The position numbers and the translations under genes were made by a program. A DNA stretch of 64,000 nt from Leidyana gryllorum EB-2025a (taxonomy: Eukaryota; Protista; Apicomplexa): contig JBLWGC010000159.1 of assembly GCA_048772705.1 (NCBI GenBank), positions 238,886 through 302,885 of the forward strand, written 5' to 3'. Below the pieces are notes generated by a model that was not told the origin of the DNA, did no database searches, and saw nothing but the letters and a program-made list of their open reading frames with translations. Below are positions 5,699-64,000 of this stretch, piece after piece (the first letter of the stretch is position 1; every line of letters begins with the position of its first letter).

Positions 5699-5793
5699 CC
5701 ATTTTCACATCTCCAAACTGTGCTCACCGTGCCGTATATATATACATTCCTCTCCTTCCAGTGTACATATGTCCTTTTAACCTTCACTTTATT

Positions 5794-7048
5794 ATGACCA
5801 CCACCACCTCAACAACAGCCACAATTCAAGACTACGTCTTCACCCTCTTCAGAAACCGCAATTCCAAGCAGGCCTTTGGATTAGTGTCCTGCAGTCAGCA
5901 TGTCCTCTTTTGGGCCCTATCAGCCGCATCCACTCTAATTGGCCCCCGTCTCCCAGATTTTGACCAAGTCGCTCGCTCGTATGACGACCCGACCAACGAC
6001 ACTTTTCTTCCCTGGATACCCGTGCCCCTTCCCCCACACTCATCTTGTCCCAGTCTAAAAGAGGCACTGGTGGAATGGATTTTGTCAACTCGGACCAGTG
6101 ATGGCGGTTTTGGTCCCTTACCGGGACACCCGCCTCAGCTTACCTCCACAGTTGTAAGTGCCCGCCGCGGGTTGGAATTTCCCGAATGACATGTCACTTC
6201 GTCTGACAGTACGCGTTGCGGTCGCTCCAGATGCTGGGAGCCCTCGCTGATGCTTTGGATGCCGTCTCGCTGAACGAGACGGCTGCGTGGATTGCTTCTT
6301 GTCAGAATGCGGATGGGAGTTTTGCGGGCGAAGGGCCCGGAGACATAGATGGGCGCTATTCGTATTGTGCAGTGCTAGCCTTGGAGATCATTGGAAGACT
6401 GGGGGCCGTGCACCTCAATGATGCCGTCAAGTGGATAATGCAGTGTTACAATCCTGACGGGGGGTTCGGCTGTTGGCCAGGGGCCGAGAGTCATGCGGCC
6501 TACACTTACTGCGCCATCGCTGGTAAGTTGTGAGGATCTGGCCGCAGGCACAGTATTCATTGACACCAATTCCAGCGCTGTCCATCTTGGGCTGTACGCA
6601 CTTTTTAGATCGTCACACCACCTGTGAATGGCTCGCGAGCCGTCAGAGGATCTCTGGCGGTATGAATGGTCGCCCCGGAAAGACAGAAGACGTTTGCTAT
6701 GCGTGGTGGGTATTGGCCAGCCTTAATCTGGTGGGTGAGTGTTGTATCTTTCTGTGTCGGACTGGAATATATTGAGAGAGATAGCCCCATCAGGAGGAAG
6801 TGATTTCGTCGATAAGGAGTCACTGATTCGTTTTATCAATAGCTGCACTGACAACGCCACAGGTACGATTGATTGATTGGATTTCTACAACCGAGAGAAA
6901 TCCTACTAACTACACAGGAGGCCTTAGTGATCGACCGGGCAATAATGCCGATATCTTCCATACGTTCTTCGGCTTTCTCGCTCTTCGACTCGCTCGTGAA
7001 GGTGGGACGGCCATAGATTGCGCTCGCTGTACACCACGCGAGTCCTAA
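5794..7048 (+). CDS. RABGGTB: Rab geranylgeranyltransferase (type II) beta subunit, multi-exon
   Basis: Prenyltransferase repeats [80 protein letters not shown] and [19 protein letters not shown]; stop TAA 7046-7048. Confidence 0.9.
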
Positions 7049-41600: not shown

Positions 41601-44600
41601 GATCGGTTGCCGGGTATGCAGAGCCATATCTGTAGGTATCATTGTACCACAGAGCCGTGCTGGGAAGAGAGTGTTGAGGAGACGGATGTCCGACGGAGTA
41701 GTGAGCGGAGGGAGATCATGAGAGCAGGTCTTTGTCAATATACTCAGCATCCGTCCCAACACGCGTGTGACCTGAAGCCCAAAAGTCACCACTGGGTTAC
41801 CTGAACCCAATCTGATATCAATGAAGCGCCATCAATTGTCAGCTCGCTGCTCTCTATTCCCGCTTACACATCAAAGATTGCTGTCAGATTGCGTTCCAAT
41901 ACGTCAAACAATTGTTTGCTGGCTGGGGCTTCCAGTGACGATCTCACGTTGGGCTCTGAGGATAGTAGAAGTCCCATCTCGACAACACCATTCGCAATGA
42001 CAGGGGCCAGAGATTTCGGCACTTCAGGACGTGGCTGCGACAATCGAGCGGCTACGGAGAGCAAATGCGGTAATGTTAATTCAATCCGTGTCAGATACCA
42101 ACTGATTTGACACCTTTTGGTAGCACCGCCAAAGCTGTTTTCTCACCACAGATTTCTCGTTCCCAGCGGATGCGTGTACAGTTTCAGCACCAACGGATCC
42201 ATCAGATTGACCATTGGAGGGGCCACGGCTTCGTACTCGGAAGATCGCATCCATCTTAGACAGGTTTTGTGCCAGAAGGATCCGAGGGCGGCGAGTACTT
42301 GGGACAGTCTGATGCTGCACCGCTTGTCTTCCTCGTCGAAGACCTGCCCATGTCTGATGGGAGCGAATAGCATTGGACGAATTATAGCGGCACGCGGGAA
42401 TTGAAGTACGGCAGTGTCAGTGATTGCCTCTCCCGCATCGTCGCATATTGCACTAAACTCAGTTATCAACGCGTCATCATCCGCATTCGCTTGACCGGAT
42501 GACGGGTGAGGGTGATTCCGAATTCCAGTCATATTAGAGAGATCTGACAACGTGCGTCTCATCCAGCCACACGAAGCCTCATTGCCAGACGAGAGCATAT
42601 AGGTACTGTGATTATCAGCTTGATTCGATAGGAAGTTTTGAGGCGTCACGTTCAGATATTGTAGGAGCGTTGTGTGGAACGGTAATCCTTTTTCACTGCT
42701 CAATTGTCGAGCGATTGCGATTGCGGCATATATTCTCTCTCCAGCGCCCGCAAACGGTGGGACATCCATAAAGAGGCCATCAGATATCGAGCAGTCAGAG
42801 CCTTTCAGACTGTAATAGAACGCAGGATTCGCCGAAAAGACAGCTGGACAGTGTTCCACCCAACAGTCGACCACCTGTTGGTATGCATAAAGGGCGTCCG
42901 ATGAAGTGCTGATCGCTTTTCGAACCTCCAGCAGAGCTGCTGCCTCACTTTCGAGATACTGCGGGACACTCGGACCGCCTCCATTCCGCAAACTCGAGAA
43001 GAGCAACTCGAGCATTTTGCGAAGTGCCTGGGGAGTGTGGAAGTGTGAGCATTGAAACATCAGATTACCGTCGTTTCTGCGCGATCTGTCTTAATCATCT
43101 GCCACTGCAGCACCATATGTGTCAACAAGGCGATCGGGGTTGAGGTGAAATCTTCGTTGACCGCTGTCCTCAAACAGGTTAGAACACTCAGCAGCTCCCA
43201 GGACTGCGGGCGGCGCGAGCGACTGAACGGCTTCCGGATAGCAGCCGGGTAAGACGCCGTGATCTCGGGCAAGTCCGCCAGCATGCGCACAGTGTCAACA
43301 AAGAGTCTCCATATGGTGGATGCTTGATGAGATCGGACCCCATTAACACATGACGGCTTTTTGAATGCTTCTCGAGGAACACTACGGCGATTTTGCAGTG
43401 CAGACACAATGGTGAAGGCGCAATGACGAGAGAGACACTGGAGATGCTGCCGCATCTTTCGACTCGTTACTATCTCTTGCTCGCGAACCTCAACTATAGC
43501 ACCCGTGAAAGAGGGTGTCTGCAGACTCCGAGACCGAGAACGCATCCGAGACAACTGAGAGTCCATCGTCCAGTTGGCTGACCCAACAGAGTCTCTACGA
43601 TAGAATCCACCCAGGCCGCGGCGGTGGTGTCTGATGCCCGTCAACAGGTATCCAAACAGAAGACCCGCAGACGTTAGATCGAGGAGAACGACCGGGGCAC
43701 CCTGGAATCCTTTGACCCGTGTGAAACTGTCGCAGAAGGCTTCTTGCCAAAAGACGAATGTCCAGGGTGTGTGAGCGAGGGGCTGAATATCAGAGAAGTC
43801 CTCAGGTAGCGAAGGAGAGTGTGTCAGTCGTCGTTCCATGCAGTTCAAATGGTACTCCAATAAGGCAGATATGAACAGTTGTTGTGGTTGGACAGAGTGT
43901 ACCAGTCCGGACTTGCCGATATCCAGCAGAGTATTGAGCGTTTCAGGACCCTTACGAGGTGAGGCGAGTGGCGGATTTGAAGAACGCACACTCTGGAGAT
44001 CGAGGTATCCTTGAAGACACGCGGCCCACATAGTCATAGCATTAACAGCCGCCAGGGAATGTGCGGGGTCGAGCAGTTGTCCCAGATCTCGCAGCCGATT
44101 CCGAAAGAAGGCTGTGGACGGTTTTTCGAGTGCGACAGCAGCCCAGCGTTCAGAGACAGCGAGAGGCGAGATGGGATCGAGAACACTGCTGGCGAGAGTA
44201 TTTTCCAGGTACGATGCCGCAGAACACTTTAGATACGATGCTGCGTGTGCGGCGCTCGCCAGGGCCACTTGGACCTCCACTGTCATTGTGCGAAGCAGCG
44301 CTGAATAGGCGTTGTAGAAAGGCTCAATCTCCAGCGTTCCCGTCATTTCCCATTGCATTATGAGCATTCGCAGCAGCAGTGGCAGTGAGTACTGCACAGA
44401 GACATGTCGGAGGGTTAGATGCGTGAGGAAAGCGCGAGCACTCGGTAAGGGTCCCTCGTCGTCGTTAACAAAGTCAACATCCTGGTTACCATTGTTGAGA
44501 GCCACAGTGAGCACATAGATAGTCCATGTTACGAGCGCAACGTGTATGACGGCCTGAGGGGAGCCGAGATCTAAAGTTTCGACAAGATGGACTCCGTGCG

Positions 44601-45234
44601 AATACAGGCTGCGGAGGACCTGATAGTTCTGCGAAGACGGGAACTTTGTGGCCAGTACCACCCATAGCGAGGCTACGGTACAGAACTCGTTGCAGTCAGC
44701 TTCGGTTATATATTCAAGCCACAGCCGTTCGCGTTCCAACCAGGGTGGTTCTGCCTGGATCTCTCTCAGCACGAATAACACAGAGGCGACTGCTACAGCG
44801 CTCCTATGAGGTACAGCAGTCTCGCTGGACGTGTTTGAGAGCCGCTCCGAGCCGGATGTCCGATACAATGACTGGGGATGATCAATGTCGAGGGAGGGAT
44901 AATAAGTAGCGGCGGACATAGCTAAGCGTGTAAAGCCCAGAGGTTCCATGGGTCGCCACAACAGCTCAATTAATAACAATACTCGGGGAATGTCGCGATG
45001 GTGAATTGGGAACTGCAATGTGTGAGCAAAGGCATGGGCTCTCGAGGCCAAGGCATTCTGTAGGGCAGTACGAGTGGGGGTGGGGAGGTCGCATGAGTAC
45101 GGGCCCGATAGGTAGTCACGTAGAGTGGCCGAAGCTGTCCACTTTGGGGGTAAGTGTGAGAATGACACGCTCCCGAGGGGGTCAGTGGGTCGGCTGACTG
45201 TGGTGAAAGGTGCGAGGAATAGGGCTGAGCTCAT
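38636..45234 (-). CDS. PI4KA: phosphatidylinositol 4-kinase type III alpha (STT4-like), multi-exon
   Basis: KSAAKAPF, IFKSNDDLRMDQVALQMI, FLRSLAAYSIVSFIIQ|IKDRHNANML..HIDFGFIL..FERAPFKLT and C-terminal TRLYDAVQALQQGIAY*; the PIK helical motif FYLPQI lies upstream. Confidence 0.9.
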
Positions 45235-45243
45235 GAAAAAACG

Positions 45244-47687
45244 ATGAAATTGCCCAAGCCTCCAGCCGCGAGGAGTTCCTTCGCAAGTTCCCTAACTGGA
45301 GCGAAAGAAGTTTCGGAAAGCCACAACTGGTCTGGATCTGACCTGGGGAGCGTGCCGCCAGCCCCTCACACACGACTATGTTTCTCTCGGGAAGTACCCG
45401 AAGTATTCGGCCCGAGACCGACCCCAAGTTGGGCAGTACGGTTGGATTCCAATTCAGAAGGGTCTTTGTGGGATTACAAACCATCTCCCACTGGGAAACG
45501 GCCGAGTGTCACATGGTCGTCAACCGTTGGGAATGATGATCATCGGTCTGGTCGACCTACCCAAGATAACTCGCACTCTGATGCTCCCGCAATGCGAGCG
45601 GTTCGACGCCGTCTCACAGCTGCGCTCTCACGATTGCCAACAGACCAACAAATGCCCCCCAGACCCATTCCGCCGTCTCCGTATCTGCCGATGCGCGGGG
45701 AGAATCCAATTATGAAAAGTACTCGACGGAGACATACGATCGTCTTTGACGACGTCCCTTCCAGGCCGCTCGCCAGAGCTGATTCGGACTTCACCACCTC
45801 ACGTACGGAGGATCGTGAGAACGAAGCGGAAATATGGGAAACGAAAGAAGTGGTGAAAGCAGAGAGTGTGTTCAAGCCGGTGCGCAAGGAGCTTCCGCCT
45901 GAATCGACATGGGAGTTTCAGTCATCGCACGGTGTCATCTCGAGTGAATTCCAGAGCCGGAAAACATCATTGTGGTCTATCGCAGACCCCATTGGAGATG
46001 ATAAGGAACACGAATCTGCCCCAAGTCTGTCATCAGTGTCACGAGGTTCAGCCTCTTACATATTAAGTCATCTGGGAGGTTCTCATGTTTCCGCATCTGG
46101 TCGTGCGATGATTGCCGAGTGAGTCTGAAAATCAGCGACAATCACAATCACAGTCTCTCCGAACAGAATAATGACGTATGCGTCAGATTCAATCGCGGCC
46201 CTCGCTTCGTTGATCCGGGCAGCGGATGACTGCGTTGCGTTGAAACCGTATTTTGAGCAACTGCGAGCCTTCACGCTCGAGCAGTCTGAACAGGTCCAAG
46301 TGAGTGAAAAGGCTTGAGAGAGAGAGAGAGTGTGTGTCTCCCCCAAACTCGGTCGCAGAAATGGTATGAAGGTTTCAGTAGATGGGACGACTTCATTGGC
46401 CTCATGATCAAAGAGTTTCAAGTCGCTGGCGGAACAATACTGCAGGTCGAAGATGCCTTGTTGGTATTACGGATAATACCACCCGGGGCGGTCCTGGCCA
46501 TATATCGTAAATGGACCAAATCACAGCGCGCCAAACTCAAACTACCTCCACTGGTGGACCGAATATGCACAATTCCTCAGTAAGTTGCCGTCTCCTCTAG
46601 CTGCTGTCATTCGTCGTCGTCGTCAAGTCTGCCTGCCATGGCATATACTCTGTCCGCTTGCTTGGCTGCGGTGCGATCTTACATCGAGACCACCAGCGCC
46701 CTGCGGAATGTGCGCAATACGGTCGAGGAGTTACAAGGCACCTCTGAAGTTCACCGACTGTTTGCTGCTGTTCGAAAATGGGTCGCTGGCCATCGCCGAA
46801 CCTACGGACGTGTAGGCCACAACCCTCAGATGTCCACTCGGACATCATTGTGGTATCTTATGCGCCTATGTCTGGATCGACCCGAGTTACGAGCCTTTCT
46901 GTCATCTTTTCTGGTGAGGACTCTCTGGTCACCCGAAAAGCCTTTCCCCCCCCGCCTACAGGGTACGGACGAGGAGGTTCGATCGAAGGTGCTTAACGAT
47001 CAATTTACTTTCATGTCTCGACTTCGGCACATGGCCAGCGGGTCGTGGCGGTGTAACGTAGAACTGGATGGGTTGGTCACCCAAACATCATTAGTGAGTG
47101 TGGAATCGCAGGCGTCGCTGATGTTCGTATCTTTCTTTGATCACAGTTTTTGAGTGGAGTGTCCACGAGCTTGAACGCGCAGCTGACATATCTGTCGACC
47201 ATTGATGACGCAATCGAAAATGCTACCACAACTCTCCGGATTGAGACCGAAAACACGGAATCTCTCCCTCAACAGAGTTTGTTCCCGGACTTCCATATCC
47301 GGCCAGCGCCCTTTCATGCCGATCAGCAACACGAGTTTATTGCCGAGTTGTCGCAGAATTTGCAGGTAATATCCTCCAGGGACCACAACCTAACAATCAT
47401 CTTATCAGACGTTGTATGAACAACTGAAGAAGCGGATGAACACAGTCTTGGGCACCAATCTCGCCATTATAGAGCTCAGCAGATGGGCGCATTGCCCTCC
47501 TCCGCCGCCATCAATGACTTTCGAAATATTGGAGACGTTTTTGATGGGCGTTGATGCAGAGATCCGCATAATTCGTACTCTGCCAGATCTAGCATCACCC
47601 TCCACCACAGCGGACGACTCTTCTTCCAGTTTGTGTCTTACTTCTGGCTCGCTGTCCGATCTGCTTCGACCATGCTACCCCAAATAG
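45244..47687 (+). CDS. hypothetical multi-exon protein, possibly with a degenerate FH2 (formin)-like helical domain
   Basis: Successive + strand ORFs separated by GT-AG introns; disordered Pro-containing N-terminus; weak FH2-like pattern (see findings). Confidence 0.5.
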
Positions 47688-47844: not shown

Positions 47845-47950
47845 GATGTCGGCCTCGAGTCAAGCCACGCGCGCCCCCTCAGGAAGTCTCGAATGAGAAT
47901 CCTTGAACTTAATTCAGTCCTCCCGAGGGCCTCACATCACCGCCCCTGCA
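47845..47950 (-). pseudogene. inverted, decayed U1 snRNA fragment (3' two-thirds)
   Basis: The + strand reads atgtcggcctcgagtcaagcc..tcaggaagtctc..ttcagtcctcccgagggcctcacatcaccg, the reverse complement of the array U1 with many substitutions; no intact ACTTACCTG. Confidence 0.75.
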
Positions 47951-48329
47951 CAAATTGTTTTGTCATGAGGCACCAGGCCGACATTGGGTCGAATAGCTGT
48001 TCCAAGTCGGTGATCCTGGCCTCTGAACACTTGCTCTACGTCCAGAACGACTCCTGTCTCATACAAAAGTCCGCGCCAATACATTTGTGCCATTGAATTA
48101 CTTGACATGTGATGGAGGGCCCACAGTCTCCTCTTCCTGACGTCTTTTTGCTCCGAAGGTTCTTTCAAATGCGGCAGAATATGATGTGGTCGCCTGCAAA
48201 AGTGATGACATGGCCTATGCTGCAGGAGGCAGCGGTCATACACGTGAACGACGCCTCTCGGTAGCTTGATTCTCGTTCGCCGGCTGCCATTGTTGAGTGC
48301 TGCGGCCGCTTCTCGACCCTCCATGCGGT

Positions 48330-48510
48330 CACCAGGCAAGGGGGCGGTCCCGTTCTTCCGGAAAGGCCCTCGGAAGGAGCTGACTCAGTTTTGGGGCCCC
48401 CATCTCAAATTGCTGCTATGGGGGGGAGGGCTTGAGTCGACGCCGACAGTGGGCGCTCAGATGATGATGGCCACATAAAATACGTTCAGTGGTACTATAG
48501 CTAAGAGCGG
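48330..48510 (+). pseudogene. decayed U1 repeat unit
   Basis: Residual blocks ggccctcggaagga, cccatct, ggcttgagtcgacgccgaca and cagtggtactatag occur in the same order as in the intact unit. Confidence 0.7.
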
Positions 48511-48619
48511 TACTCCAGCTCCCTCAGTCGCAGGTGGATTTGACTGAAGCGTGTCAATGGGGCTTTTGACGACGGAGACGAGACGGCGGGTACCTCCCTG
48601 TTTACTATCTACAAAAATC

Positions 48620-48784
48620 AACTTACCTGCGGATTGCAACCGTCTGATCAATAAGAGGCGTGCAGAGGGCGGAGCAGCCTTTGCACTACCGGTGGTGTGA
48701 GGCCCTCGGGAGGTCTGAACTAAGTCCAGTGTCTCCCATCTGAGACTTTCTGAGAGGGCGGACGAGGCTTGACTCGACGCCGAC
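48620..48784 (+). ncRNA. U1: U1 snRNA copy 1
   Basis: 5' ACUUACCUG; helix H CGGAU/AUCUG; SL1 loop GAUCAAUAAG; SL2 loop UUGCAC; SL3; Sm-like ACUUUCUGA; terminal SL4; ~165 nt. Confidence 0.92.
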
Positions 48785-48961
48785 AATGTGTTTTCAGACT
48801 GCGATTGACGGGTACGGTACTCTTAGTGACACTATAGGTGAGATTGGCACATCAAATGGTTCAGTAGGCTGAGAACTCTCGAGGCACCCGACGACGGAGA
48901 CGGCAGCGAGTCGGCGGAGACGAGACGGCGGATACCTCCCTGTTTACTGTCTGCAAAAATC

Positions 48962-49126
48962 AACTTACCTGCGGATTGCAACCGTCTGATCACTAAGAGG
49001 CGTGCAGAGGGCGGAGCAGCCTTTGCACTTCCGGTGATGTGAGGCCCTCGGGAGGACTGAACTAAGTCCAGTGTCTCCCATCTGAGACTTTCTGAGAGGG
49101 CGGACGAGGCTTGACTCGACGCCGAC
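48962..49126 (+). ncRNA. U1: U1 snRNA copy 2
   Basis: As copy 1; SL1 loop GAUCACUAAG. Confidence 0.92.
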
Positions 49127-49303
49127 AATGTGTTTTCAGGTTGCGATGGACGGGTAAAGTACTCTTAGTGACACTGTAGGTGAGATTGGCACATCGAATG
49201 GCTCAGTAGGCTGAGGACTCTCGAGGCACCCGACGACGGAGACGGCAGCGGGTCGGCGGAGACGAGACGGCGGGTACCTCCCTGTTTACTATCTACAAAA
49301 ATC

Positions 49304-49468
49304 AACTTACCTGCGGATTGCAACCGTCTGATCAATAAGAGGCGTGCAGAGGGCGGAGCAGCCTTTGCACTTCCGGTGATGTGAGGCCCTCGGGAGGACT
49401 GAACTAAGTCCAGTGTCTCCCATCTGAGACTTTCTGAGAGGGCGGACGAGGCTTGACTCGACGCCGAC
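49304..49468 (+). ncRNA. U1: U1 snRNA copy 3
   Basis: Same U1 motifs and cloverleaf. Confidence 0.92.
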
Positions 49469-49645
49469 AATGTGTTTTCAGGTTGCGATGAACGGGTAAA
49501 GTACTCTTGGTGACACTGTAGGTGAGATTGGCACATCAAATGGTTCAGTAGGCTGAGAACTCTCGAGGCACCCGACGACGGAGACGGCAGCGGGTCGGCG
49601 GAGACGAGACGGCGGGTACCTCCCTGTTCACTATCTGCAAAAATC

Positions 49646-49810
49646 AACTTACCTGCGGATTGCAACCGTCTGATCAATAAGAGGCGTGCAGAGGGCGGAG
49701 CAGCCTTTGCACTACCGGTGGTGTGAGGCCCTCGGGAGGACTGAACTAAGTCCAGTGTCTCCCATCTGAGACTTTCTGAGAGGGCGGACGAGGCTTGACT
49801 CGACGCCGAC
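49646..49810 (+). ncRNA. U1: U1 snRNA copy 4
   Basis: Same U1 motifs and cloverleaf. Confidence 0.92.
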
Positions 49811-49984
49811 AATGTGTTTTCAGGTTGCGAAAGATGGATGACGTACTCTTAGTGACACTGTAGGTGAGATTGGCACACCGAATGGCTCAGTAGGCTGAGG
49901 ACTCTCGAGGCATCCGACGGAGACGGCAGCGAGTCGGCGGAGACGAGACGGCGGGTACCTCCCTGTTCACTATCTACAAAAATC

Positions 49985-50148
49985 AACTTACCTGCGGATT
50001 GCAACCGTCTGATCACTAAGAGGCGTGCAGAGGGCGGAGCAGCCTTTGCACTACCGGTGGTGTGAGGCCCTCGGGAGGACTGAACTAAGTTCATGTCTCC
50101 CATCTGAGACTTTCTGAGAGGGCGGACGAGGCTTGACTCGACGCCGAC
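49985..50148 (+). ncRNA. U1: U1 snRNA copy 5
   Basis: Same motifs; 1-nt deletion in SL3. Confidence 0.9.
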
Positions 50149-50325
50149 GATGTGTTTTCAGGTTGCGATGGACGGGTAAAGTACTCTTAGTGACACTATA
50201 GGTGAGATTGGCACATCAAATGGTTCAGTAGGCTGAGAACTCTCGAGGCACCCGACGACGGAGACGGCAGCGGGTCGGCGGAGACGAGACGGCGGGTACC
50301 TCCCTGTTCACTATCTACAAAAATC

Positions 50326-50490
50326 AACTTACCTGCGGATTGCAACCGTCTGATCACTAAGAGGCGTGCAGAGGGCGGAGCAGCCTTTGCACTACCGGTG
50401 GTGTGAGGCCCTCGGAAGGACTGAACTAAGTTCAGTGTCTCCCATCTGAGACTTTCTGAGAGGGCGGACGAGGCTTGACTCGACGCCGAC
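50326..50490 (+). ncRNA. U1: U1 snRNA copy 6
   Basis: Same motifs; SL3 starts GGAAG. Confidence 0.92.
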
Positions 50491-50667
50491 GATGTGTTTT
50501 CAGGTTGCGATGGACGGGTAAAGTACTCTTAGTGACACTATAGGTGAGATTGGCACATCAAATGGTTCAGTAGGCTGAGAACTCTCGAGGCACCCGACGA
50601 CGGAGACGGCAGCGGGTCGGCGGAGACGAGACGGCGGGTACCTCCCTGTTCACTATCTACAAAAATC

Positions 50668-50832
50668 AACTTACCTGCGGATTGCAACCGTCTGATCACT
50701 AAGAGGCGTGCAGAGGGCGGAGCAGCCTTTGCACTACCGGTGGTGTGAGGCCCTCGGAAGGACTGAACTAAGTTCAGTGTCTCCCATCTGAGACTTTCTG
50801 AGAGGGCGGACGAGGCTTGACTCGACGCCGAC
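50668..50832 (+). ncRNA. U1: U1 snRNA copy 7
   Basis: Same motifs; SL3 starts GGAAG. Confidence 0.92.
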
Positions 50833-51009
50833 AATGTGTTTTCAGGCTGCGATTGACGGGTACGGTACTCTTAGTGACACTATAGGTGAGATTGGCACAT
50901 CAAATGGTTCAGTAGGCTGAGAACTCTCGAGGCACCCGACGACGGAGACTGCACCGAGTCGGCGGAGACGAGACGGCGGGTACCTCTCTGTTTGCTATCT
51001 ACAAAAATC

Positions 51010-51174
51010 AACTTACCTGCGGATTGCAACCGTCTGATCACTAAGAGGCGTGCAGAGGGCGGAGCAGCCTTTGCACTACCGGTGGTGTGAGGCCCTCGGG
51101 AGGACTGAACTAAGTTCAGTGTCTCCCATCTGAGACTTTCTGAGAGGGCGGACGAGGCTTGACTCGACGCCGAC
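51010..51174 (+). ncRNA. U1: U1 snRNA copy 8
   Basis: Same U1 motifs and cloverleaf. Confidence 0.92.
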
Positions 51175-51351
51175 GATGTGTTTTCAGGCTGCGATGGACG
51201 GGTAAAGTACTCTTAGTGACACTATAGGTGAGATTGGCACATCAAATGGTTCAGTAGGCTGAGAACTCTCGAGGCACCCGACGACGGAGACTGCAGCGAG
51301 TCGGCGGAGACGAGACGGCGGGTACCTCCCTGTTTACTGTCTGCAAAAATC

Positions 51352-51516
51352 AACTTACCTGCGGATTGCAACCGTCCGATCAATAAGAGGCGTGCAGAGG
51401 GCGGAGCAGCCTTTGCACTACCGGTGGTGTGAGGCCCTCGGGAGGACTGAACTAAGTTCAGTGTCTCCCATCTGAGACTTTCTGAGAGGGCGGACGGGGC
51501 TTGACTCGACGCCGAC
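51352..51516 (+). ncRNA. U1: U1 snRNA copy 9
   Basis: Same motifs; substitutions at the SL1 closing pair and in SL4. Confidence 0.9.
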
Positions 51517-51695
51517 AATGTGTGTTTTCAGGCTGCGATGGACGGGTAAAGTACTCTTAGTGACACTATAGGTGAGATTGGCACATCAAATGGTTCAGTA
51601 GGCTGAGAACTCTCGAGGCACCCGACGACGGAGACGGCAGCGGGTCGGCGGAGACGAGACGGCGGGTACCTCCCTGTTCACTATCTGCAAAAATC

Positions 51696-51860
51696 AACTT
51701 ACCTGCGGACTGCAACCGTCTGATCAATAAGAGGCGTGCAGAGGGCGGAGCAGCCTTTGCACTACCGGTGGTGTGAGGCCCTCGGGAGGACTGAACTAAG
51801 TTCAGTGTCTCCCATCTGAGACTTTCTGAGAGGGCGGACGAGGCTTGACTCGACGCCGAC
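51696..51860 (+). ncRNA. U1: U1 snRNA copy 10
   Basis: Same motifs; helix H reads CGGAC. Confidence 0.9.
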
Positions 51861-52037
51861 AATGTGTTTTCAGGTTGCGAAGGATGGATAACGTACTCTT
51901 AGTGACACTATAGGTGAGATTGGCACATCAAATGGTTCAGTAGGCTGAGAACTCTCGAGGCACCCGACGACGGAGACGGCAGCGGGTCGGCGGAGACGAG
52001 ACGGCGGGTACCTCCCTGTTCACTATCTACAAAAATC

Positions 52038-52202
52038 AACTTACCTGCGGATTGCAACCGTCTGATCACTAAGAGGCGTGCAGAGGGCGGAGCAGCCTTT
52101 GCACTACCGGTGGTGTGAGGCCCTCGGAAGGACTGAACTAAGTTCAGTGTCTCCCATCTGAGACTTTCTGAGAGGGCGGACGAGGCTTGACTCGACGCCG
52201 AC
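52038..52202 (+). ncRNA. U1: U1 snRNA copy 11
   Basis: Same motifs; SL3 starts GGAAG. Confidence 0.92.
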
Positions 52203-52379
52203 GATGTGTTTTCAGGTTGCGATGGACGGGTAAAGTACTCTTAGTGACACTATAGGTGAGATTGGCACATCAAATGGTTCAGTAGGCTGAGAACTCTCGA
52301 GGCACCCGACGACGGAGACGGCAGCGGGTCGGCGGAGACGAGACGGCGGGTACCTCCCTGTTCACTATCTACAAAAATC

Positions 52380-52544
52380 AACTTACCTGCGGATTGCAAC
52401 CGTCTGATCAATGAGAGGCGTGCAGAGGGCGGAGCAGCCTTTGCACTACCGGTGGTGTGAGGCCCTCGGGAGGACTGAACTAAGTCCAGTGTCTCCCATC
52501 TGAGACTTTCTGAGAGGGCGGACGGGGCTTGACTCGACGCCGAC
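52380..52544 (+). ncRNA. U1: U1 snRNA copy 12
   Basis: Same motifs; SL1 loop GAUCAAUGAG; followed by T6. Confidence 0.92.
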
Positions 52545-52783
52545 ATTTTTTGCCAGAGACATATGCAGCAAAACATAGCTCCCACTCCAGTGCAAAGTAT
52601 TGTGAACCGTCGATTCAAAGCGGTGAGGATAGGGAGAGAGACGGCGAGGGTTTTGGCGGGGCTGCCAGATTAAATTTCGTGACCATCATCTACCCCTTTA
52701 ACGCTTCCTACATATCAATACTGCCCCTCGAACCATCCCTTCGTATCGATAATTAAAGAGCGGACGTTCTTTGAATCTCAACA

Positions 52784-54190
52784 ATGGAATCAGTGCATCA
52801 ACAAGATGTTTTACTCATCACAATGGAAGCACATGGACACATTCGTCCGTTTATGGCACTGGGGCAGTTATTGCATCAATACAGTAATGGAGAAATTCGT
52901 TGTCATCTTCTGTACCCGAATATCGGCAATGATAAATTACCTGTCTCTGAATTTCCGGATGTTGGTATATTAGCCATAGAGGTCCCGCAAGAGGCTCGGG
53001 ACATCTCCGACATGATAGAGCGATTCAAGTGGATGATCTCACACGGTGAGCTGCTGCTGGAGCGTGGTTTCAATTTGGCGAGCAATTTGAGTCTCCGAGC
53101 GGTGATCTATGAGTCTTTCCTGGAATGGGGTCACAATCTTGCCGAGATGCTGGGAGTCAAAAGCTTCGCATTCTGTACCTTCGCACTACACATGTACTAT
53201 CTGATGGGCAGAATCGGATGGGGTTCTCAATTGACTCCGTCTGATGAGCAAAGAACCATAAAAGGATTGGGCACTCTCAGTGCACAATGTCTCCCATACG
53301 GTGACGGAACAGTTTGGAAAGGAATGTTGAAACCTGGCAGCTCTCGCAGTATCATAGCGAATGACAGCCCGTGCCAACCAGGCTTTCCAATTCTACAAGA
53401 CATTGTCGAAAGAGATCTACTTGTGGCCACCCCAAAGTATGAGAAGGGCGTGGTACACACCCTTGGATATCTCAACGATATGCTGCCAGCGACCAGATCC
53501 AACGATGGGGCTGATGACACTATCGCATGGCTCGATACTCAACCCGACCGCTCAGTCATCTTTGTTGCACTCGGCTCCTGGGTTCAACTGGATGTGTGTG
53601 ATGTCATTGAGTTGGCTGAGGCCTTACGACTGCTGGATGCTCCATTCCTATGGGCTCTTCGAGCCCGGGTGGGAGACAGTAAGAGGTGTAATGGCTCCCC
53701 AGACGTTGGAGGGGGGGATCAGGCTGAGCATTGCCGACTTCCGCCTGTGGATACCGACCAGTACGGTCTCCCTGTGGGCTATCGAGAGGAAATAGAAGGA
53801 CGCTCTCTAATAGTGCCGTGGGTGGATCAGAAGAGAGTACTGAAGCATCGAGCTATCAAGCTGTTCATCACACACTGTGGATGGAACAGTTTGACGGAGA
53901 GTGTTGCTATCAGTCCGGTCCCCAAGGCATTCATCCCTGTGGCTGGAGAACAGGCCCTGAACGCTGAAGTAGCTGAACGGTTCTGGAAGATTGGTAAACA
54001 GCTCTGGGTGGACGGCAAGCCGAAAACTCTGCAACGGAATGTCATCGTTGAGAGGGTGACAGAGTGCCTGAAGGATCCCACAATTACACAAACTGCCGAG
54101 AAGCTGCACCGCGAGCATCAGACTCACTTGAATTCGAGAGCAGAACTCTGTATTCAGCGCCTATTGGCTGATATACGCAGTGACCAATAG
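52784..54190 (+). CDS. family 1 UDP-glycosyltransferase, plant PSPG-type (468 aa, intronless)
   Basis: AHGHIRPF (catalytic His), VIYESFLEWG..AEMLGV, WLDTQPDRSVIFVALGS, PFLWALR and PSPG box WVDQKRVLKHRAIKLFITHCGWNSLTESV..P..FIPVAGEQ; no signal peptide or C-terminal TM. Confidence 0.95.
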   Translation: MESVHQQDVLLITMEAHGHIRPFMALGQLLHQYSNGEIRCHLLYPNIGNDKLPVSEFPDVGILAIEVPQEARDISDMIERFKWMISHGELLLERGFNLASNLSLRAVIYESFLEWGHNLAEMLGVKSFAFCTFALHMYYLMGRIGWGSQLTPSDEQRTIKGLGTLSAQCLPYGDGTVWKGMLKPGSSRSIIANDSPCQPGFPILQDIVERDLLVATPKYEKGVVHTLGYLNDMLPATRSNDGADDTIAWLDTQPDRSVIFVALGSWVQLDVCDVIELAEALRLLDAPFLWALRARVGDSKRCNGSPDVGGGDQAEHCRLPPVDTDQYGLPVGYREEIEGRSLIVPWVDQKRVLKHRAIKLFITHCGWNSLTESVAISPVPKAFIPVAGEQALNAEVAERFWKIGKQLWVDGKPKTLQRNVIVERVTECLKDPTITQTAEKLHREHQTHLNSRAELCIQRLLADIRSDQ

Positions 54191-54441: not shown

Positions 54442-54612
54442 TGAGTGGTTCTGGGAGTGCGAGGGCTTAAATGATACGTTTCTGGGTTATTAGCGTCGAG
54501 CATCGTGGTCTAGCTTCTGTCTTTTGCAAAACAATAAACTACCGCTACGGGTGTTACGTCTCTAGGGAGACGTTGTGTCTCTAGGAAGTTGTTACTTTCC
54601 TTTCACCTCTCA
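54442..54612 (-). repeat. 3' LTR of copy B (171 bp, TG...CA)
   Basis: Reverse complement of 59027-59197, identical by eye. Confidence 0.97.
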
Positions 54613-54620
54613 CGCCCCCT

Positions 54621-57600
54621 CTAAAGAGCAACTTCCTGGGTGCCGGGATCTCTCACTTGGAGACATAGGCGGTAAGCAGTGGCACTAGCACGGCTGGCCA
54701 CTCGGCGTCTCTTCCGAGACCTTGACTTCGGGGCTGGCCGTAGGTCAGTTCCCCGAGCGTGTAGTGTTGCCGTCAGCACATCCTCGGCCTTGGCGAGCGG
54801 CTTGGCGCGTAGGTCGGCGAGCTCGTCTAGCTCGGCGAGTTGGAGCATCTCCGGCGCTTGCGGTGCAGCCAAGCGGAGCAGCTCCCCGACGGACACCGTT
54901 CTCTCTTCCTGCGGATCTCGGCAGGATTTAATGGTGGCGCCCGTGCCTGACTCGCTCACCGCGATGACCTCATAAGGTAAGCTGAAGGTCGGGGTGAAGC
55001 GGCTCGCGCCGTAGTGGCGAGTCAGTGCAGCGCGCTCACCTTCGCTGAGGCGGACGACGACGGTGTCTCCGACCTCAGGGAGGTAGCGTACGGCTGGGCG
55101 GCGAGCGTCGGCTGCTTTTGCCGAGAGTTGCACGGCGTGCTGCCTCGCCAGTTCCAGAAGTTGGAGACGGTCTCCCGTGTCCAGTGTAGGCTGGAGGGCG
55201 TCTAACTCTTGGCTCGTCGGGGTGCCCATGGGTAGCCCCGAGAGCATGAAGAAGGGGGACTCACCCAATGCGGGGTGATGCGTGGCTCGATAGGCGTACA
55301 TTACTGTGGCCACTGCGGTTGGTAAGGGGAGGCTGGACTGGGCCACGAGCGCGTTGAGTCCACGGTTCAGGAACTGGTGAAAGGCCTCGCATACTGCGTT
55401 CCCTTGCTTGTGGGCTTTCCAGGTGTACATGACCTGGATGCCATGGCGCCTCGCGTCTTCCTGGAACGACTCGGCCCTAAAGGCCGTGCCGTTATCACAA
55501 ATGAGCCTCGTTGGGGCTCCGTACCGGCAGATCCAATCCTCGTAGAGGACTCGCCAGGCAGTCTTGGCCGTTACGTCCGGGACTGCTATGGCCTCGGCCA
55601 CTCGTAGGCAATGGTCAATCATCGTTTGGATGTAGTAGACCTTACCACCCCAGGGGAAACTTCCTACGTGGTCAATGGCCACCGTGTCGAACGGGCGTGG
55701 AGTCACGTGGTCTCCGGGGCCAGCGGTGTTTACGATTGCTCGACGGCGCGCGCAGATTTGGCATTGCCGCACCATCTCGGTTACGTCCGCTCGTAAGTTT
55801 GGCCAATAGAAGCGCCTCGCGATGGCTGCGGCTGTTCGCCTGATCCCTTGGTGGGCGCCAACAGTACCACAGTGGTGGTAGAGAACGATTTGAGAACGGA
55901 GTGCGGCTGGCACATAGGCTCGCATGGACTCCGTCCACCAGACTCCGCCCCTATGGGTGCAGCGGAAGGCGGTCGGCTCGCTCTCTGCGGCCGTCGCTGC
56001 TTTAAACTCTTCCAGCGTTGGCAGTGTGAAGCCAGTGTACGCTGGTTGAACCGAAATCTCGAGTCGGTTCAGGAGTGCGGTCAACGATATGCGGTCATCG
56101 ATGACGGCATCCATCGGTTGGTCGTTGTCGATCCGGCTTAGGTGATCGACGTGACCCTGCAAAATCCCTTTACGGTAGTGGATCTCGAAGTCATACTCGC
56201 TCAGAGCGAGCGCCCATCGGGCGATCCGGCGGTTGGAGGCTGTCCAGAGCCACTTCAACCCCTCGTGGTCCGTACGGACTGTGAACGGTCGGTACCTCAG
56301 GTACTCGGCGTACTTCGCGATGGCACAGACGATGATGAAAGCTTCCAGTTCGCGGATAGGCCACTTCCTCTCCGCTTCCGACCATCGACGGGAGTAATAG
56401 GCGATTGGCCGGGGCTCTCCGTCGTCTCCGGGCTGCAGCAAGATGGCACCTCCTCCGATCTCACTAGCGTCGGTGTCGAGGATGAACTCCTTATCCGGAT
56501 CGGGGTACGCTAAGAGGACGTCCTGCGCAAGTGCCTCTTGCAGTGCGCGGTAGGCCGCGACGGTCTCTTCCGTCTCATCGATCGGCCCGTCTGCGCCCCC
56601 TTTGAACAGGTCGTACAGAGCACTCGAGATCTCGCCGAATTGGGGGATGAAGGTCCTGAAGTAGGATGCTAGCCCTAAGAACGAGCGAAGTTCCGACATC
56701 GTTCTGGGGAAGGGCGTCTCCATAACCGCCTTGACCTTGGCCGGGTTTGGCCGGATCCCATTCTCATTCACGACGTGCCCCAAGTACAGGATCTCCTTCT
56801 GGAGGGCCGATGACTTCTTGATGTTTAGGTACAGTTTCGCGTCAGTCAACCGTTTCAGGACCTCGTTGAGGGTCCGGTTGTGCTCATCGACGCTTCGCGA
56901 GTAGATGACGATATCATCCAAGTAAACTAGGACACCGTTCCCTAGTAGGGGTCCTAGCACTCTGTGCATGACTCGTTGGAAAGTGGCAGGCGCGTTCCGT
57001 AAGCCAAAAGGCATCGCCGTACAGGCGTACAGTCCTCGCGGGGTTACTATCGTCGTCTTCATCACGTCCTCCTCCGCCACCCTGATCTGATGGTACCCAG
57101 ACTTCAGATCAAGAGATGTGAAGACGGCTGCTCCTCGCAGGGACCAGACCAAGTGTTGGATGTGGGGGAGCGGGAACCTGTCCGGTACCGTGACTTTATT
57201 CAACTTGCGATAGTCAACGCAGATGCGTAGTTCGCCTGTCTTCTTGGGGACGATGACTACGGGCGAGGACCAGGGAGACCCTTCCACTGGTACCAGTGCT
57301 CCAACCTTCACGAGGTCGCCGAACTGGCGGTCCACTTCGGCCTCGGCGTCTGGGTGTAGGGGCCTGGCGCGCTGGAAGACAGGGCGTGCTCCAGGGGTGA
57401 TCTCAATGCGGTGAGTCTCTATGTCGCACTTGGCGATGTGGGTCTTCGCCCAGCACGCCTCGTTCCGCTGGAAGATCTCCAGTACGTCTCTCTTGGCCTC
57501 TGGACCAAAGACATCTGACGTGATTGCCATCACGTCCTCGAGGGTCCGGTGGTCGATGGCTTGCTGAAGCTCAACGAGGTTCAGCTCATAGGTTCCGCCC

Positions 57601-59026
57601 GGTGCCTCGAGTGGCACGGTTTCCCCTCCTATCTCCAGTGTTCGTGTTGCGTAGTCTAATCGACTGGCGGTGCCCAGTAGGTATGTACGGCCGAGTAAGT
57701 CGCTGCCGACCGCCTCGTCTGGCACCACTAGACAGCGCTCCAGTGCTGTGGTTGTGCCCACGGTTATCGGGATGGTCACCTCTCCCAAGATCTGTACTGC
57801 TCCTCCTACGCCCTTCGCCCCGAGCTGGCTGGCTCCCACTGTATCCGGCTGGGTCCCATGCTTCATCGCGTTCTGGAGTGTACTGCGCCTCAGGACTGTC
57901 ACGTCCGCCCCAGGGTCCACCGTCATCACTATCGGAATATGACCAACGAGAGCTTTCACGCTGCCGAAGCTCTGCGAGAATGCGATCGTTTCGGCTGGGC
58001 TCATGGCCTGCGGCTGGCATTGTACACGACCCACGTGGGCCTGAGTCGCGGTGGGGGTCTCACCGGTGGGTTGCCGCTGCTGTTCCGTCGGGGGCGTCAT
58101 GTCTTCGTCCACCTGGGTGGGCTCTGTAGTGTTTCCGGTCGCAGCCTGCTGGGAGGCGTTCCGGATGGCGTCTCTCTTGTCTCTCTGCCTGTCCCGGTTC
58201 TTCTGGTTCTTCATCGCCTCCTGCTGCTGCCGCTCTCGGAAGTAACCACCTAGCCTGCCCAGCGCCTCTTCGAGCGACTTGGGCTGCTTTACTACGATGT
58301 GAACGGCAGTCTTCCTTTGGTGGAGGACCATCTGCGACCCTAACTGGATCTCCTTGACTTCGCAGTCCTGCTCACGGTGTCCCTTCGTGCCACACTTTGG
58401 GCAGGGGAGGCGACACCGAGTCTCCGTGTGTCCGGCTTGCTGACACCGGTAGCAAATGATTGGGGGCTTTGCTGTGCCCGTAGTGCCTATTGGGGCTGAC
58501 TCGCCCGCTACGTGGTACAGACGTGGCCAGGAGGAGATAGTCTCTTCCTCACTGGACTCAGAGTCTGACGTATATCGAGCGTTGAGGCTTCGTAGTGCCG
58601 CTACGACCTCAGCCAACGTCTCGGGACGGGGGTGGAGCCCGTGTAACTTCGCGTTTAAGGCCGGCGGGGCCATGCGGACTAGGGTCGCCACCCAGTCCGT
58701 TTCTCGACGCCGCTTCCGCGGGTCCCAACGCTTACTCAACCTGTCGTGAGTCTTACGTAATGCCTTGAAGGTTCGGAGGGCCTCATTCAGTGTCTGGCAC
58801 GGTGGTGGCCGCTGCGCTAGCTTCCGAATTTGACGGAACCAGTCTCCTCCCTCGAAGTGTTCGCGCACCAGCGCGTCGCAGAAAGCTGTTGCAGTCTCCG
58901 CCTGTATGTTCGAGGAGCTCAGAGTCTCTCCCAGAGACCCGCACGCTGTTGCCCTGATGAGCAAGGGGAGTGCTCGGTCTGGGTATCCACGCGCTGCCAG
59001 CGCTATGGCCCAGTTGTGGCATTGAT
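54621..59026 (-). CDS. Gag-Pol polyprotein of copy B, 5'-truncated
   Basis: The 1447 aa of the track ORF match the C-terminal part of ORF 59136..63824; the N-terminus is missing at the junction. Confidence 0.85.
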
Positions 59027-59197
59027 TGAGAGGTGAAAGGAAAGTAACAACTTCCTAGAGACACAACGTCTCCCTAGAGACGTAACACCCGTAGCGGTAG
59101 TTTATTGTTTTGCAAAAGACAGAAGCTAGACCACGATGCTCGACGCTAATAACCCAGAAACGTATCATTTAAGCCCTCGCACTCCCAGAACCACTCA
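59027..59197 (+). repeat. 5' LTR of copy A (171 bp; TGAG...CTCA termini)
   Basis: Direct repeat of 63833-64000. Confidence 0.97.
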
Positions 59198-62100
59198 AAG
59201 TGGTGCATCTGCCGGGAAACAGCGAGTAAGTGTACCCACCTGGGATCCGTGGGGTCCGGGGCCCTCTGACAGTGAGGACAGTGGTTACGAGTCCATAGAC
59301 GAAGATGACAGGGGTCGCCCTGCACTAGGAAGACGAGACGCAGACATGGTTGCGCGGATGTTCCAGCAACTGAGGGTCAAGCAGACCTTCGACCCCGCGT
59401 CCGAACAGGAATTTGACGATCAATGCCACAACTGGGCCATAGCGCTGGCAGCGCGTGGATACCCAGACCGAGCACTCCCCTTGCTCATCAGGGCAACAGC
59501 GTGCGGGTCTCTGGGAGAGACTCTGAGCTCCTCGAACATACAGGCGGAGACTGCAACAGCTTTCTGCGACGCGCTGGTGCGCGAACACTTCGAGGGAGGA
59601 GACTGGTTCCGTCAAATTCGGAAGCTAGCGCAGCGGCCACCACCGTGCCAGACACTGAATGAGGCCCTCCGAACCTTCAAGGCATTACGTAAGACTCACG
59701 ACAGGTTGAGTAAGCGTTGGGACCCGCGGAAGCGGCGTCGAGAAACGGACTGGGTGGCGACCCTAGTCCGCATGGCCCCGCCGGCCTTAAACGCGAAGTT
59801 ACACGGGCTCCACCCCCGTCCCGAGACGTTGGCTGAGGTCGTAGCGGCACTACGAAGCCTCAACGCTCGATATACGTCAGACTCTGAGTCCAGTGAGGAA
59901 GAGACTATCTCCTCCTGGCCACGTCTGTACCACGTAGCGGGCGAGTCAGCCCCAATAGGCACTACGGGCACAGCAAAGCCCCCAATCATTTGCTACCGGT
60001 GTCAGCAAGCCGGACACACGGAGACTCGGTGTCGCCTCCCCTGCCCAAAGTGTGGCACGAAGGGACACCGTGAGCAGGACTGCGAAGTCAAGGAGATCCA
60101 GTTAGGGTCGCAGATGGTCCTCCACCAAAGGAAGACTGCCGTTCACATCGTAGTAAAGCAGCCCAAGTCGCTCGAAGAGGCGCTGGGCAGGCTAGGTGGT
60201 TACTTCCGAGAGCGGCAGCAGCAGGAGGCGATGAAGAACCAGAAGAACCGGGACAGGCAGAGAGACAAGAGAGACGCCATCCGGAACGCCTCCCAGCAGG
60301 CTGCGACCGGAAACACTACAGAGCCCACCCAGGTGGACGAAGACATGACGCCCCCGACGGAACAGCAGCGGCAACCCACCGGTGAGACCCCCACCGCGAC
60401 TCAGGCCCACGTGGGTCGTGTACAATGCCAGCCGCAGGCCATGAGCCCAGCCGAAACGATCGCATTCTCGCAGAGCTTCGGCAGCGTGAAAGCTCTCGTT
60501 GGTCATATTCCGATAGTGATGACGGTGGACCCTGGGGCGGACGTGACAGTCCTGAGGCGCAGTACACTCCAGAACGCGATGAAGCATGGGACCCAGCCGG
60601 ATACAGTGGGAGCCAGCCAGCTCGGGGCGAAGGGCGTAGGAGGAGCAGTACAGATCTTGGGAGAGGTGACCATCCCGATAACCGTGGGCACAACCACAGC
60701 ACTGGAGCGCTGTCTAGTGGTGCCAGACGAGGCGGTCGGCAGCGACTTACTCGGCCGTACATACCTACTGGGCACCGCCAGTCGATTAGACTACGCAACA
60801 CGAACACTGGAGATAGGAGGGGAAACCGTGCCACTCGAGGCACCGGGCGGAACCTATGAGCTGAACCTCGTTGAGCTTCAGCAAGCCATCGACCACCGGA
60901 CCCTCGAGGACGTGATGGCAATCACGTCAGATGTCTTTGGTCCAGAGGCCAAGAGAGACGTACTGGAGATCTTCCAGCGGAACGAGGCGTGCTGGGCGAA
61001 GACCCACATCGCCAAGTGCGACATAGAGACTCACCGCATTGAGATCACCCCTGGAGCACGCCCTGTCTTCCAGCGCGCCAGGCCCCTACACCCAGACGCC
61101 GAGGCCGAAGTGGACCGCCAGTTCGGCGACCTCGTGAAGGTTGGAGCACTGGTACCAGTGGAAGGGTCTCCCTGGTCCTCGCCCGTAGTCATCGTCCCCA
61201 AGAAGACAGGCGAACTACGCATCTGCGTTGACTATCGCAAGTTGAATAAAGTCACGGTACCGGACAGGTTCCCGCTCCCCCACATCCAACACTTGGTCTG
61301 GTCCCTGCGAGGAGCAGCCGTCTTCACATCTCTTGATCTGAAGTCTGGGTACCATCAGATCAGGGTGGCGGAGGAGGACGTGATGAAGACGACGATAGTA
61401 ACCCCGCGAGGACTGTACGCCTGTACGGCGATGCCTTTTGGCTTACGGAACGCGCCTGCCACTTTCCAACGAGTCATGCACAGAGTGCTAGGACCCCTAC
61501 TAGGGAACGGTGTCCTAGTTTACTTGGATGATATCGTCATCTACTCGCGAAGCGTCGATGAGCACAACCGGACCCTCAACGAGGTCCTGAAACGGTTGAC
61601 TGACGCGAAACTGTACCTAAACATCAAGAAGTCATCGGCCCTCCAGAAGGAGATCCTGTACTTGGGGCACGTCGTGAATGAGAATGGGATCCGGCCAAAC
61701 CCGGCCAAGGTCAAGGCGGTTATGGAGACGCCCTTCCCCAGAACGATGTCGGAACTTCGCTCGTTCTTAGGGCTAGCATCCTACTTCAGGACCTTCATCC
61801 CCCAATTCGGCGAGATCTCGAGTGCTCTGTACGACCTGTTCAAAGGGGGCGCAGACGGGCCGATCGATGAGACGGAAGAGACCGTCGCGGCCTACCGCGC
61901 ACTGCAAGAGGCACTTGCGCAGGACGTCCTCTTAGCGTACCCCGATCCGGATAAGGAGTTCATCCTCGACACCGACGCTAGTGAGATCGGAGGAGGTGCC
62001 ATCTTGCTGCAGCCCGGAGACGACGGAGAGCCCCGGCCAATCGCCTATTACTCCCGTCGATGGTCGGAAGCGGAGAGGAAGTGGCCTATCCGCGAACTGG

Positions 62101-63824: not shown

Positions 63825-63832
63825 AGGGGGCG

Positions 63833-64000
63833 TGAGAGGTGAAAGGAAAGTAACAACTTCCTAGAGACACAACGTCTCCCTAGAGACGTAACACCCGTAG
63901 CGGTAGTTTATTGTTTTGCAAAAGACAGAAGCTAGACCACGATGCTCGACGCTAATAACCCAGAAACGTATCATTTAAGCCCTCGCACTCCCAGAACCAC
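63833..64000 (+). repeat. 3' LTR of copy A (truncated by window end)
   Basis: Identical by eye to 59027-59194. Confidence 0.97.

Follow-up and report, generated by a model that had tools for sequence, protein, structure and literature searches.

The 64-kb window analysed here (contig JBLWGC010000159.1, C159, of the gregarine Leidyana gryllorum, positions 238,886 to 302,885) contains a 4-kb stretch that is confirmed, on sequence evidence, to be a head-to-tail array of 12 U1 small nuclear RNA (snRNA) genes. A tandem U1 array of 12 copies on the plus strand had been claimed in the initial annotation, and this claim is borne out by 12 full-length matches to the Rfam U1 family (RF00003). The identity of the array is supported because the covariance-model E-values are significant, covariation is seen family-wide, and conservation is higher in the U1 part than in the spacer. 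According to Tandem Repeats Finder, window positions 48573-52545 form a tandem repeat with a period of 342 bp, 11.6 copies and 96% matches. An Rfam E-value scan of positions 48000-53000 gave exactly 12 matches to RF00003, all on the plus strand and all spanning model positions 1-166, with scores of 43.5-50.6 bits and E-values from 8.5e-11 to 9.3e-9; no Rfam family besides U1 was found in this interval, even at E<=10. The matches are thus significant by E-value, so that the refuting outcome named in the initial annotation, the lack of a significant U1 match, did not occur; the Rfam gathering score is missed, as discussed below. The reading that we consider likely is that the array represents twelve autonomous genes with their own promoter-like elements, which would encode a canonical but lineage-divergent U1 for 5′ splice-site recognition and would have been amplified and homogenised by unequal exchange.

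The whole array (48573..52545, plus strand) is composed of the 12 U1 genes, 11 full spacers of 177 nt and, ahead of copy 1, a promoter stub of 46 nt. The copies, 164-165 nt long, start at 48619 to 52379 with a spacing of 339-344 bp, and an alignment of all 12 places each of them 0-4 positions off the array consensus. Copy 1 lies at 48619..48783 (48.0 bits, E 4.7e-10, model 1-166), copy 2 at 48961..49125 (48.5 bits, E 3.4e-10), copy 3 at 49303..49467 (49.0 bits, E 2.5e-10) and copy 4, which is one base off the array consensus, at 49645..49809 (48.5 bits, E 3.3e-10). Copy 5 (49984..50147, 48.4 bits) has a 1-nt deletion in stem-loop 3, and is followed by copies 6 (50325..50489, 45.8 bits), 7 (50667..50831, 45.8 bits), 8 (51009..51173, 48.8 bits) and 9 (51351..51515, 45.6 bits). 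The best score belongs to copy 10 (51695..51859, 50.6 bits, E 8.5e-11); copy 11 occupies 52037..52201 (45.8 bits), and copy 12 (52379..52543, 43.5 bits, E 9.3e-9) is followed by CATTTTTTG and unique DNA. Each 342-bp unit, made up of 165 nt of U1 coding region and 177 nt of spacer, would be an independent gene. The initial annotation quotes the label "ORF repeat" for the locus; the repeat itself stands, and the open reading frame (ORF) part of the label is weak. The antisense ORFs over the array are short (84-215 aa), interrupted by stops in most units, and begin with TTG in all but one case. A protein-coding reading of these ORFs was rejected, as the two longest (49165-49812 and 47932-48339) have no Pfam match and every frame contains 42-61 stops. 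A 4-kb repeat with antisense ORFs, which could have been taken for coding sequence, is accordingly corrected to twelve U1 genes.

All of the U1 motifs listed in the initial annotation (5′ arm, closing helix, loops, Sm position and terminal hairpin) are present and aligned with the consensus of the model. The 5′ single-stranded ACUUACCUG, the arm for 5′ splice-site pairing, occurs in all 12 copies and is invariant in 22 of 22 aligned U1 genes; it is predicted to pair with 5′ splice sites. In the alignment to RF00003, helix H of the array copies is CGGA/UCUG, the loop of stem-loop 1, which is bound by U1-70K, reads GAUCA(A/C)UAAG against the consensus GAUCAaGAAG, and the loop of stem-loop 2, bound by U1A, reads UUUGCAC against AUUGCAC. 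The Sm position holds ACUUUCUGA and precedes a terminal hairpin. The Sm site is defined as PuAU4-6GPu and lies between stem-loops 3 and 4 (PMC3848767). Regarding the protein partners, one gene for a U1-70K N-terminal domain was found on contig C169 and one gene for a U1C zinc finger on C92. The predicted RNA would adopt the canonical U1 fold and associate with U1-70K, U1A, U1C and the Sm ring.

The fold was assessed with an alignment of 22 U1 genes, five of them array copies and 17 dispersed genes located elsewhere in the genome. RNAalifold recovered the U1 architecture from this alignment, that is, a four-way junction of helix H and stem-loops 1-3 together with stem-loop 4, comprising 42 pairs in seven helices. 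Among the alignment cells at these pairs, 96.2% are paired, and compensatory change on both sides occurs at 27 of the 42 pairs, with all seven helices supported by covariation. By comparison, 500 column shuffles gave 13.8 +/- 2.0 covarying pairs, none of them (0/500) reaching 27, and sliding the 3′ partners by 1-3 columns gave 2-8. As the tested structure came from the alignment itself, there is some bias in its favour, but the margin is large. Neither ACTTACCTG nor the TGCAC loop core shows any variation in the alignment, and the Sm-site core TTT-N-TG is invariant except for its variable middle base.

Constraint on the U1 part is apparent from a comparison of 35 full units drawn from this array and a sister array on contig C216. 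Nucleotide diversity (pi) is 0.017 in the U1 part versus 0.047 in the spacer, about 2.8 times lower, and variable columns number 15 of 165 in U1 versus 43 of 177 in the spacer (Fisher p 1.7e-4). Most, not all, of the differences among the twelve copies were mapped onto the structure: the changes at U1 positions 16, 33, 35, 70, 77 and 92 fall in loops or at unpaired sites, that at position 147 converts an A-U pair to G-U, and those at positions 27 and 96 each break one stem pair in one copy. Units are 95-100% alike, whether they come from the same array or from different ones, and both arrays contain the same multi-site spacer haplotypes, which is compatible with gene conversion or a recently shared origin. 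Unequal crossing-over together with gene conversion would keep the units alike. Beyond the arrays and the relics at their edges, there is no match to the array spacer. Stem-loop 3 of the array type is distinct from that of every dispersed variant. A solitary U1 on contig C41 (L037:4599-5110) is 98% identical to the array copies, lies 139 nt downstream of a signal recognition particle (SRP) RNA gene, and has flanks unrelated to the array spacer. Since such similarity is retained at an unrelated locus, the RNA sequence is maintained independently of the array, which speaks against a dead satellite. This solitary copy may be either a progenitor of the arrays or a recipient of conversion. The possibility that the C216 array is a haplotig or assembly duplicate of the present one was rejected, as the flanking genes for UDP-glycosyltransferase (UGT) are only 49-67% identical and are arranged differently.

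Upstream of copy 1, a promoter-like block (48574..48597, plus strand) contains GGAGACGAGACGG at -45..-33 and GTACCTCC at -29..-22, and it recurs at the same offset before every copy. Among the 35 units, the spacer has a single invariant block of appreciable size, unit positions 295-313, which holds GGAGACGAGACGG. The last ~50 nt of the spacer may act as a promoter resembling the proximal sequence element, so that each unit would be transcribed on its own. The motif is not confined to the array: in 10 of the 13 independent U1 lineages, a forward G[AG]GAC starts within -50..-36 upstream of the gene (binomial p 3.6e-12 for a background of 0.041), and the same core, in either orientation, is present roughly 35-75 nt upstream of most of the U2, U4 and U5 genes examined, GGGAC being among the most enriched 5-mers of snRNA upstream regions. 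A GTACCTCC-like element also precedes several dispersed U1 copies, including the best-scoring one, and an A-rich stretch precedes the U1 +1. A candidate element for snRNA promoters in a poorly studied group of parasites thus emerges, consisting of GGAGAC..ACGG at -45 and TACCTCC at -25. In the U6 genes the core is reversed and lies near -74, and near -30, where the U1 genes have GTACCTCC, there is a TATA-like CATATTAC. The U6 genes terminate in T6 and the SRP genes in T7. In animals, snRNA promoters with a proximal element and no TATA box direct RNA polymerase II, and those with a TATA box direct RNA polymerase III. As the U1 genes combine a proximal element with the lack of a TATA box, transcription of the units by RNA polymerase II is most likely by this animal rule.

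Several observations weigh against twelve functional, canonical U1 genes of this kind. All array copies remain below the gathering threshold while other U1 genes of the genome score higher, and the array type might represent a minor or specialised U1 variant. Both protein-binding loops are one base off the consensus, and the Sm site GACUUUCUGA, which is correctly placed, has its U run broken by two C and does not strictly fit PuAU4-6GPu. The minimum-free-energy fold of a single copy is not U1-shaped and is no better than that of shuffles (z -0.8); this single-sequence result was regarded as uninformative, and the covariation analysis was preferred. The lower variation in U1 could stem in part from conversion tracts and not from selection. 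Finally, TTTT is found at +8..+11 after the internal copies and TTTTTT at +3..+8 after the last copy, which leaves RNA polymerase III possible.

Regarding the scores, the gathering score of RF00003 is 69.5 bits, and nothing was found in the whole 64-kb window at Rfam gathering thresholds. No U1 in the 15.5-Mb genome reaches 69.5 bits; singletons on contigs C104, C121 and C35 attain 68.9 bits (the best value of the genome), 63.1 bits and 59.1 bits, respectively. As the array and all other U1 genes miss the cut-off, the shortfall reflects divergence of the lineage and not a property of the array or a missing U1. A default Rfam annotation would thus report zero U1 genes for this genome, and because the gathering thresholds miss every U1 here, the snRNA inventories of such lineages are probably under-counted. 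The SRP RNA matches seen in the genome are all far below their Rfam cut-offs.

The difference between these singletons and the array copies (43-51 bits) would also be expected if the array were a U1-derived satellite, i.e., amplified pseudogenes or variants that are silent or barely expressed, with functional U1 supplied by the higher-scoring dispersed genes. The departures of the array copies from consensus, which affect both loops as well as the Sm site, the decayed U1 relics that flank the array, and the retrotransposon inserted in the sister array point in the same direction. However, the U1 part is 2.8 times less variable than the spacer, the promoter-like block is invariant, and most of the examined differences among the 12 copies fall in loops, at unpaired sites or in a G-U pair, two breaking a stem pair and one being a 1-nt deletion. 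Furthermore, the same RNA is kept at 98% identity at the unrelated C41 locus, and the Sm variant ACTTTCTG is common to the array and most dispersed U1 genes. A satellite origin of this kind is therefore considered very unlikely.

A second alternative accepts the same U1 genes but assigns their transcription to RNA polymerase III as in trypanosomatids, with a tRNA-like A/B box in the spacer and termination at T-runs. Besides the T-runs after the array copies, the absence of any internal run of four T from the array-type U1 would suit this enzyme, the spacer sequence GGTTCAGTAGG is B-box-like by eye, and dispersed U1 genes lie just downstream of SRP RNA genes, which are of the polymerase III type. 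ARAGORN, however, detected no tRNA gene in the window, and the Rfam scan of 48000-53000 gave no tRNA match at E<=10, U1 being the only family found, so that a tRNA-like element in the spacer is unsupported by either program. Downstream of most dispersed U1 genes, which have the -45 motif in common with the array, the first 20 nt contain no T-run, and several of these genes include an internal TTTT, which weighs against the T-run as a polymerase III terminator. The T6-T7 ends are a feature of U6 and SRP genes, and the TATA-like box of U6 is absent from U1. Transcription by polymerase III thus seems unlikely, and polymerase II-driven units remain the preferred interpretation.

The copy number of U1 was compared with that of the other snRNAs in the assembly (15.5 Mb, 237 contigs; G+C of the window about 53%) by a DNA search with one unit, nhmmer and two further Rfam scans, which give snRNA counts that are lower bounds. 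The genome contains about 62 full-length U1 genes versus 7-11 for U2, 5 for U4, 14 for U5 and 8 for U6, so that the comparison suggested together with the initial annotation, about 62 versus 5-14 for each other snRNA, turned out in favour of a U1 excess. In addition to the 12 plus-strand units of the present window, the sister array provides 26 units on the minus strand (C216:4943-13806) and 2 units on the plus strand (C216:15849-16403). One solitary U1 is the C41 copy mentioned above, another single copy at C216:20199 is 84% identical to the array copies, and about 20 dispersed copies are 71-79% identical to the array type. The array sequence type, i.e., this array and the 26 + 2 units of C216, supplies about two thirds of the ~62 genes. 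The gene counts are consistent with selection for U1 dosage, which had been suggested initially, and this is inseparable here from neutral expansion of the array by unequal crossing-over. A more far-reaching and rather unlikely proposal is that ~40 near-identical tandem genes and at least 13 diverged, structurally intact U1 lineages, a 4-12-fold excess over U2, U4, U5 and U6, could point to a demand for U1 that exceeds the stoichiometry of splicing (e.g., guarding transcripts from premature cleavage and polyadenylation among abutting genes) or stage-specific U1 variants. If true, either would be unreported in apicomplexans within our limited literature search. The U1-specific gene amplification in a small genome makes the need for excess U1 in unicellular eukaryotes a testable question.

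Tandem arrays of snRNA genes are classical in animals, for example the U1 tandem repeats of sea urchin and Xenopus, and the present array adds a case of this known type. As in the animal U1 and U2 arrays, the units are arranged head-to-tail and each carries one snRNA gene with an upstream promoter element, the activity of which is predicted here; near-identical units, shared polymorphisms and concerted evolution are likewise common to both. On the other hand, the animal units are about 1-6 kb in length, whereas the unit here is 342 bp, and the host is a compact 15.5-Mb protist genome that houses both arrays alongside about 20 dispersed U1 genes of diverged sequence. For the human RNU2 array, 5-82 copies are reported (PMC12997089). 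Multigene families with U1 variants are also represented by the human variant U1 snRNAs (PMC10870369) and the five U1 genes of Drosophila (PMC10645366). In common with these families, the present genome has several U1 sequence types in which the 5′ splice-site arm and the fold are kept, but the variants here differ by 21-29% and show many compensatory changes in stems. This divergence is probably greater than that among animal U1 variants. The snRNA genes of trypanosomatids are transcribed by polymerase III with the aid of upstream tRNA A/B boxes. The close packing of small-RNA genes and the T-runs after the array copies are reminiscent of that system, whereas no tRNA or tRNA-like element was detected here and most U1 genes of the genome have no downstream T-run. 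Full-text literature searches yielded no account of snRNA gene arrays from gregarines. In the genome paper on Porospora, spliceosomal RNAs were searched with Rfam; the word "snRNA" is absent from its main text, and no spliceosomal-RNA counts or arrays were found in it.

Within the same genome, dispersed U1 variants are found in cassettes of about 1 kb with the order U5(-), SRP RNA(+) and U1(+) on C12, C33, C85, C152, C159 and C35, the SRP RNA of the C35 copy not being detected in the Rfam scan. The U1 genes of these cassettes resemble those of the array in the U1 fold, the promoter-like motif at -45 and the Sm variant, and the array-type U1 of C41 likewise lies behind an SRP RNA gene, whereas the array units hold U1 only. 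Upstream of the U5 genes, the GGAGACG core occurs in the reverse orientation, pointing to promoter elements that the snRNA genes may share.

At the left edge of the array, a decayed partial U1 in inverted orientation (47849..47955, minus strand, model 59-165) was detected with an nhmmer profile of the array (E 2.5e-21) and is 83-85% identical to the units. A 3′ half of U1 in a state of strong decay (48357..48446, plus strand, profile 70-165) lies shortly before copy 1 and was found at E 2.7e-7 by nhmmer. On the other side, an intronless UGT gene (52784-54190, Pfam UDPGT E 1.2e-11) begins 240 nt after the end of the last U1 at 52543. An array-type U1 is located directly upstream of a UGT paralogue in the same orientation at four places, namely in the window, at two sites on C216 and on C41. 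The two C216 sites comprise U1 at C216:15849-16403 followed by UGT at C216:16559-17947, and U1 at C216:20199 followed by UGT at C216:20660-22033; the large minus-strand array of C216 has a UGT paralogue upstream instead. UGT paralogues are also encoded at L037:2831-4162 and 5326-6681 on the C41 stretch and at L029:3958-5331 on the C216 stretch. The UGT paralogues are 35-67% identical and the associated U1 genes 84-98% identical, which looks like a joint duplication of U1-UGT modules of which only the U1 part may have been kept alike.

Positions 54442-64000 of the window, at the very end of C159, are occupied by two inverted gypsy copies that meet head-to-head near 59025. A gypsy element also forms C216:1-4946, and the identity among it and the two window copies is 99.98-100%. 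In the sister array, gypsy is inserted 59 nt past the 3′ end of a U1, truncating that unit (C216:4943-5166). The inverted pair may represent either a genuine nested insertion or an assembly artefact of the fold-back type, and the gypsy element that C159 and C216 have in common may mean that the two contigs adjoin. An example of the compactness of the genome is provided by two divergent long ORFs, 43060-45234 (minus strand) and 45244-46122 (plus strand), which are 9 bp apart and neither of which has a Pfam match.

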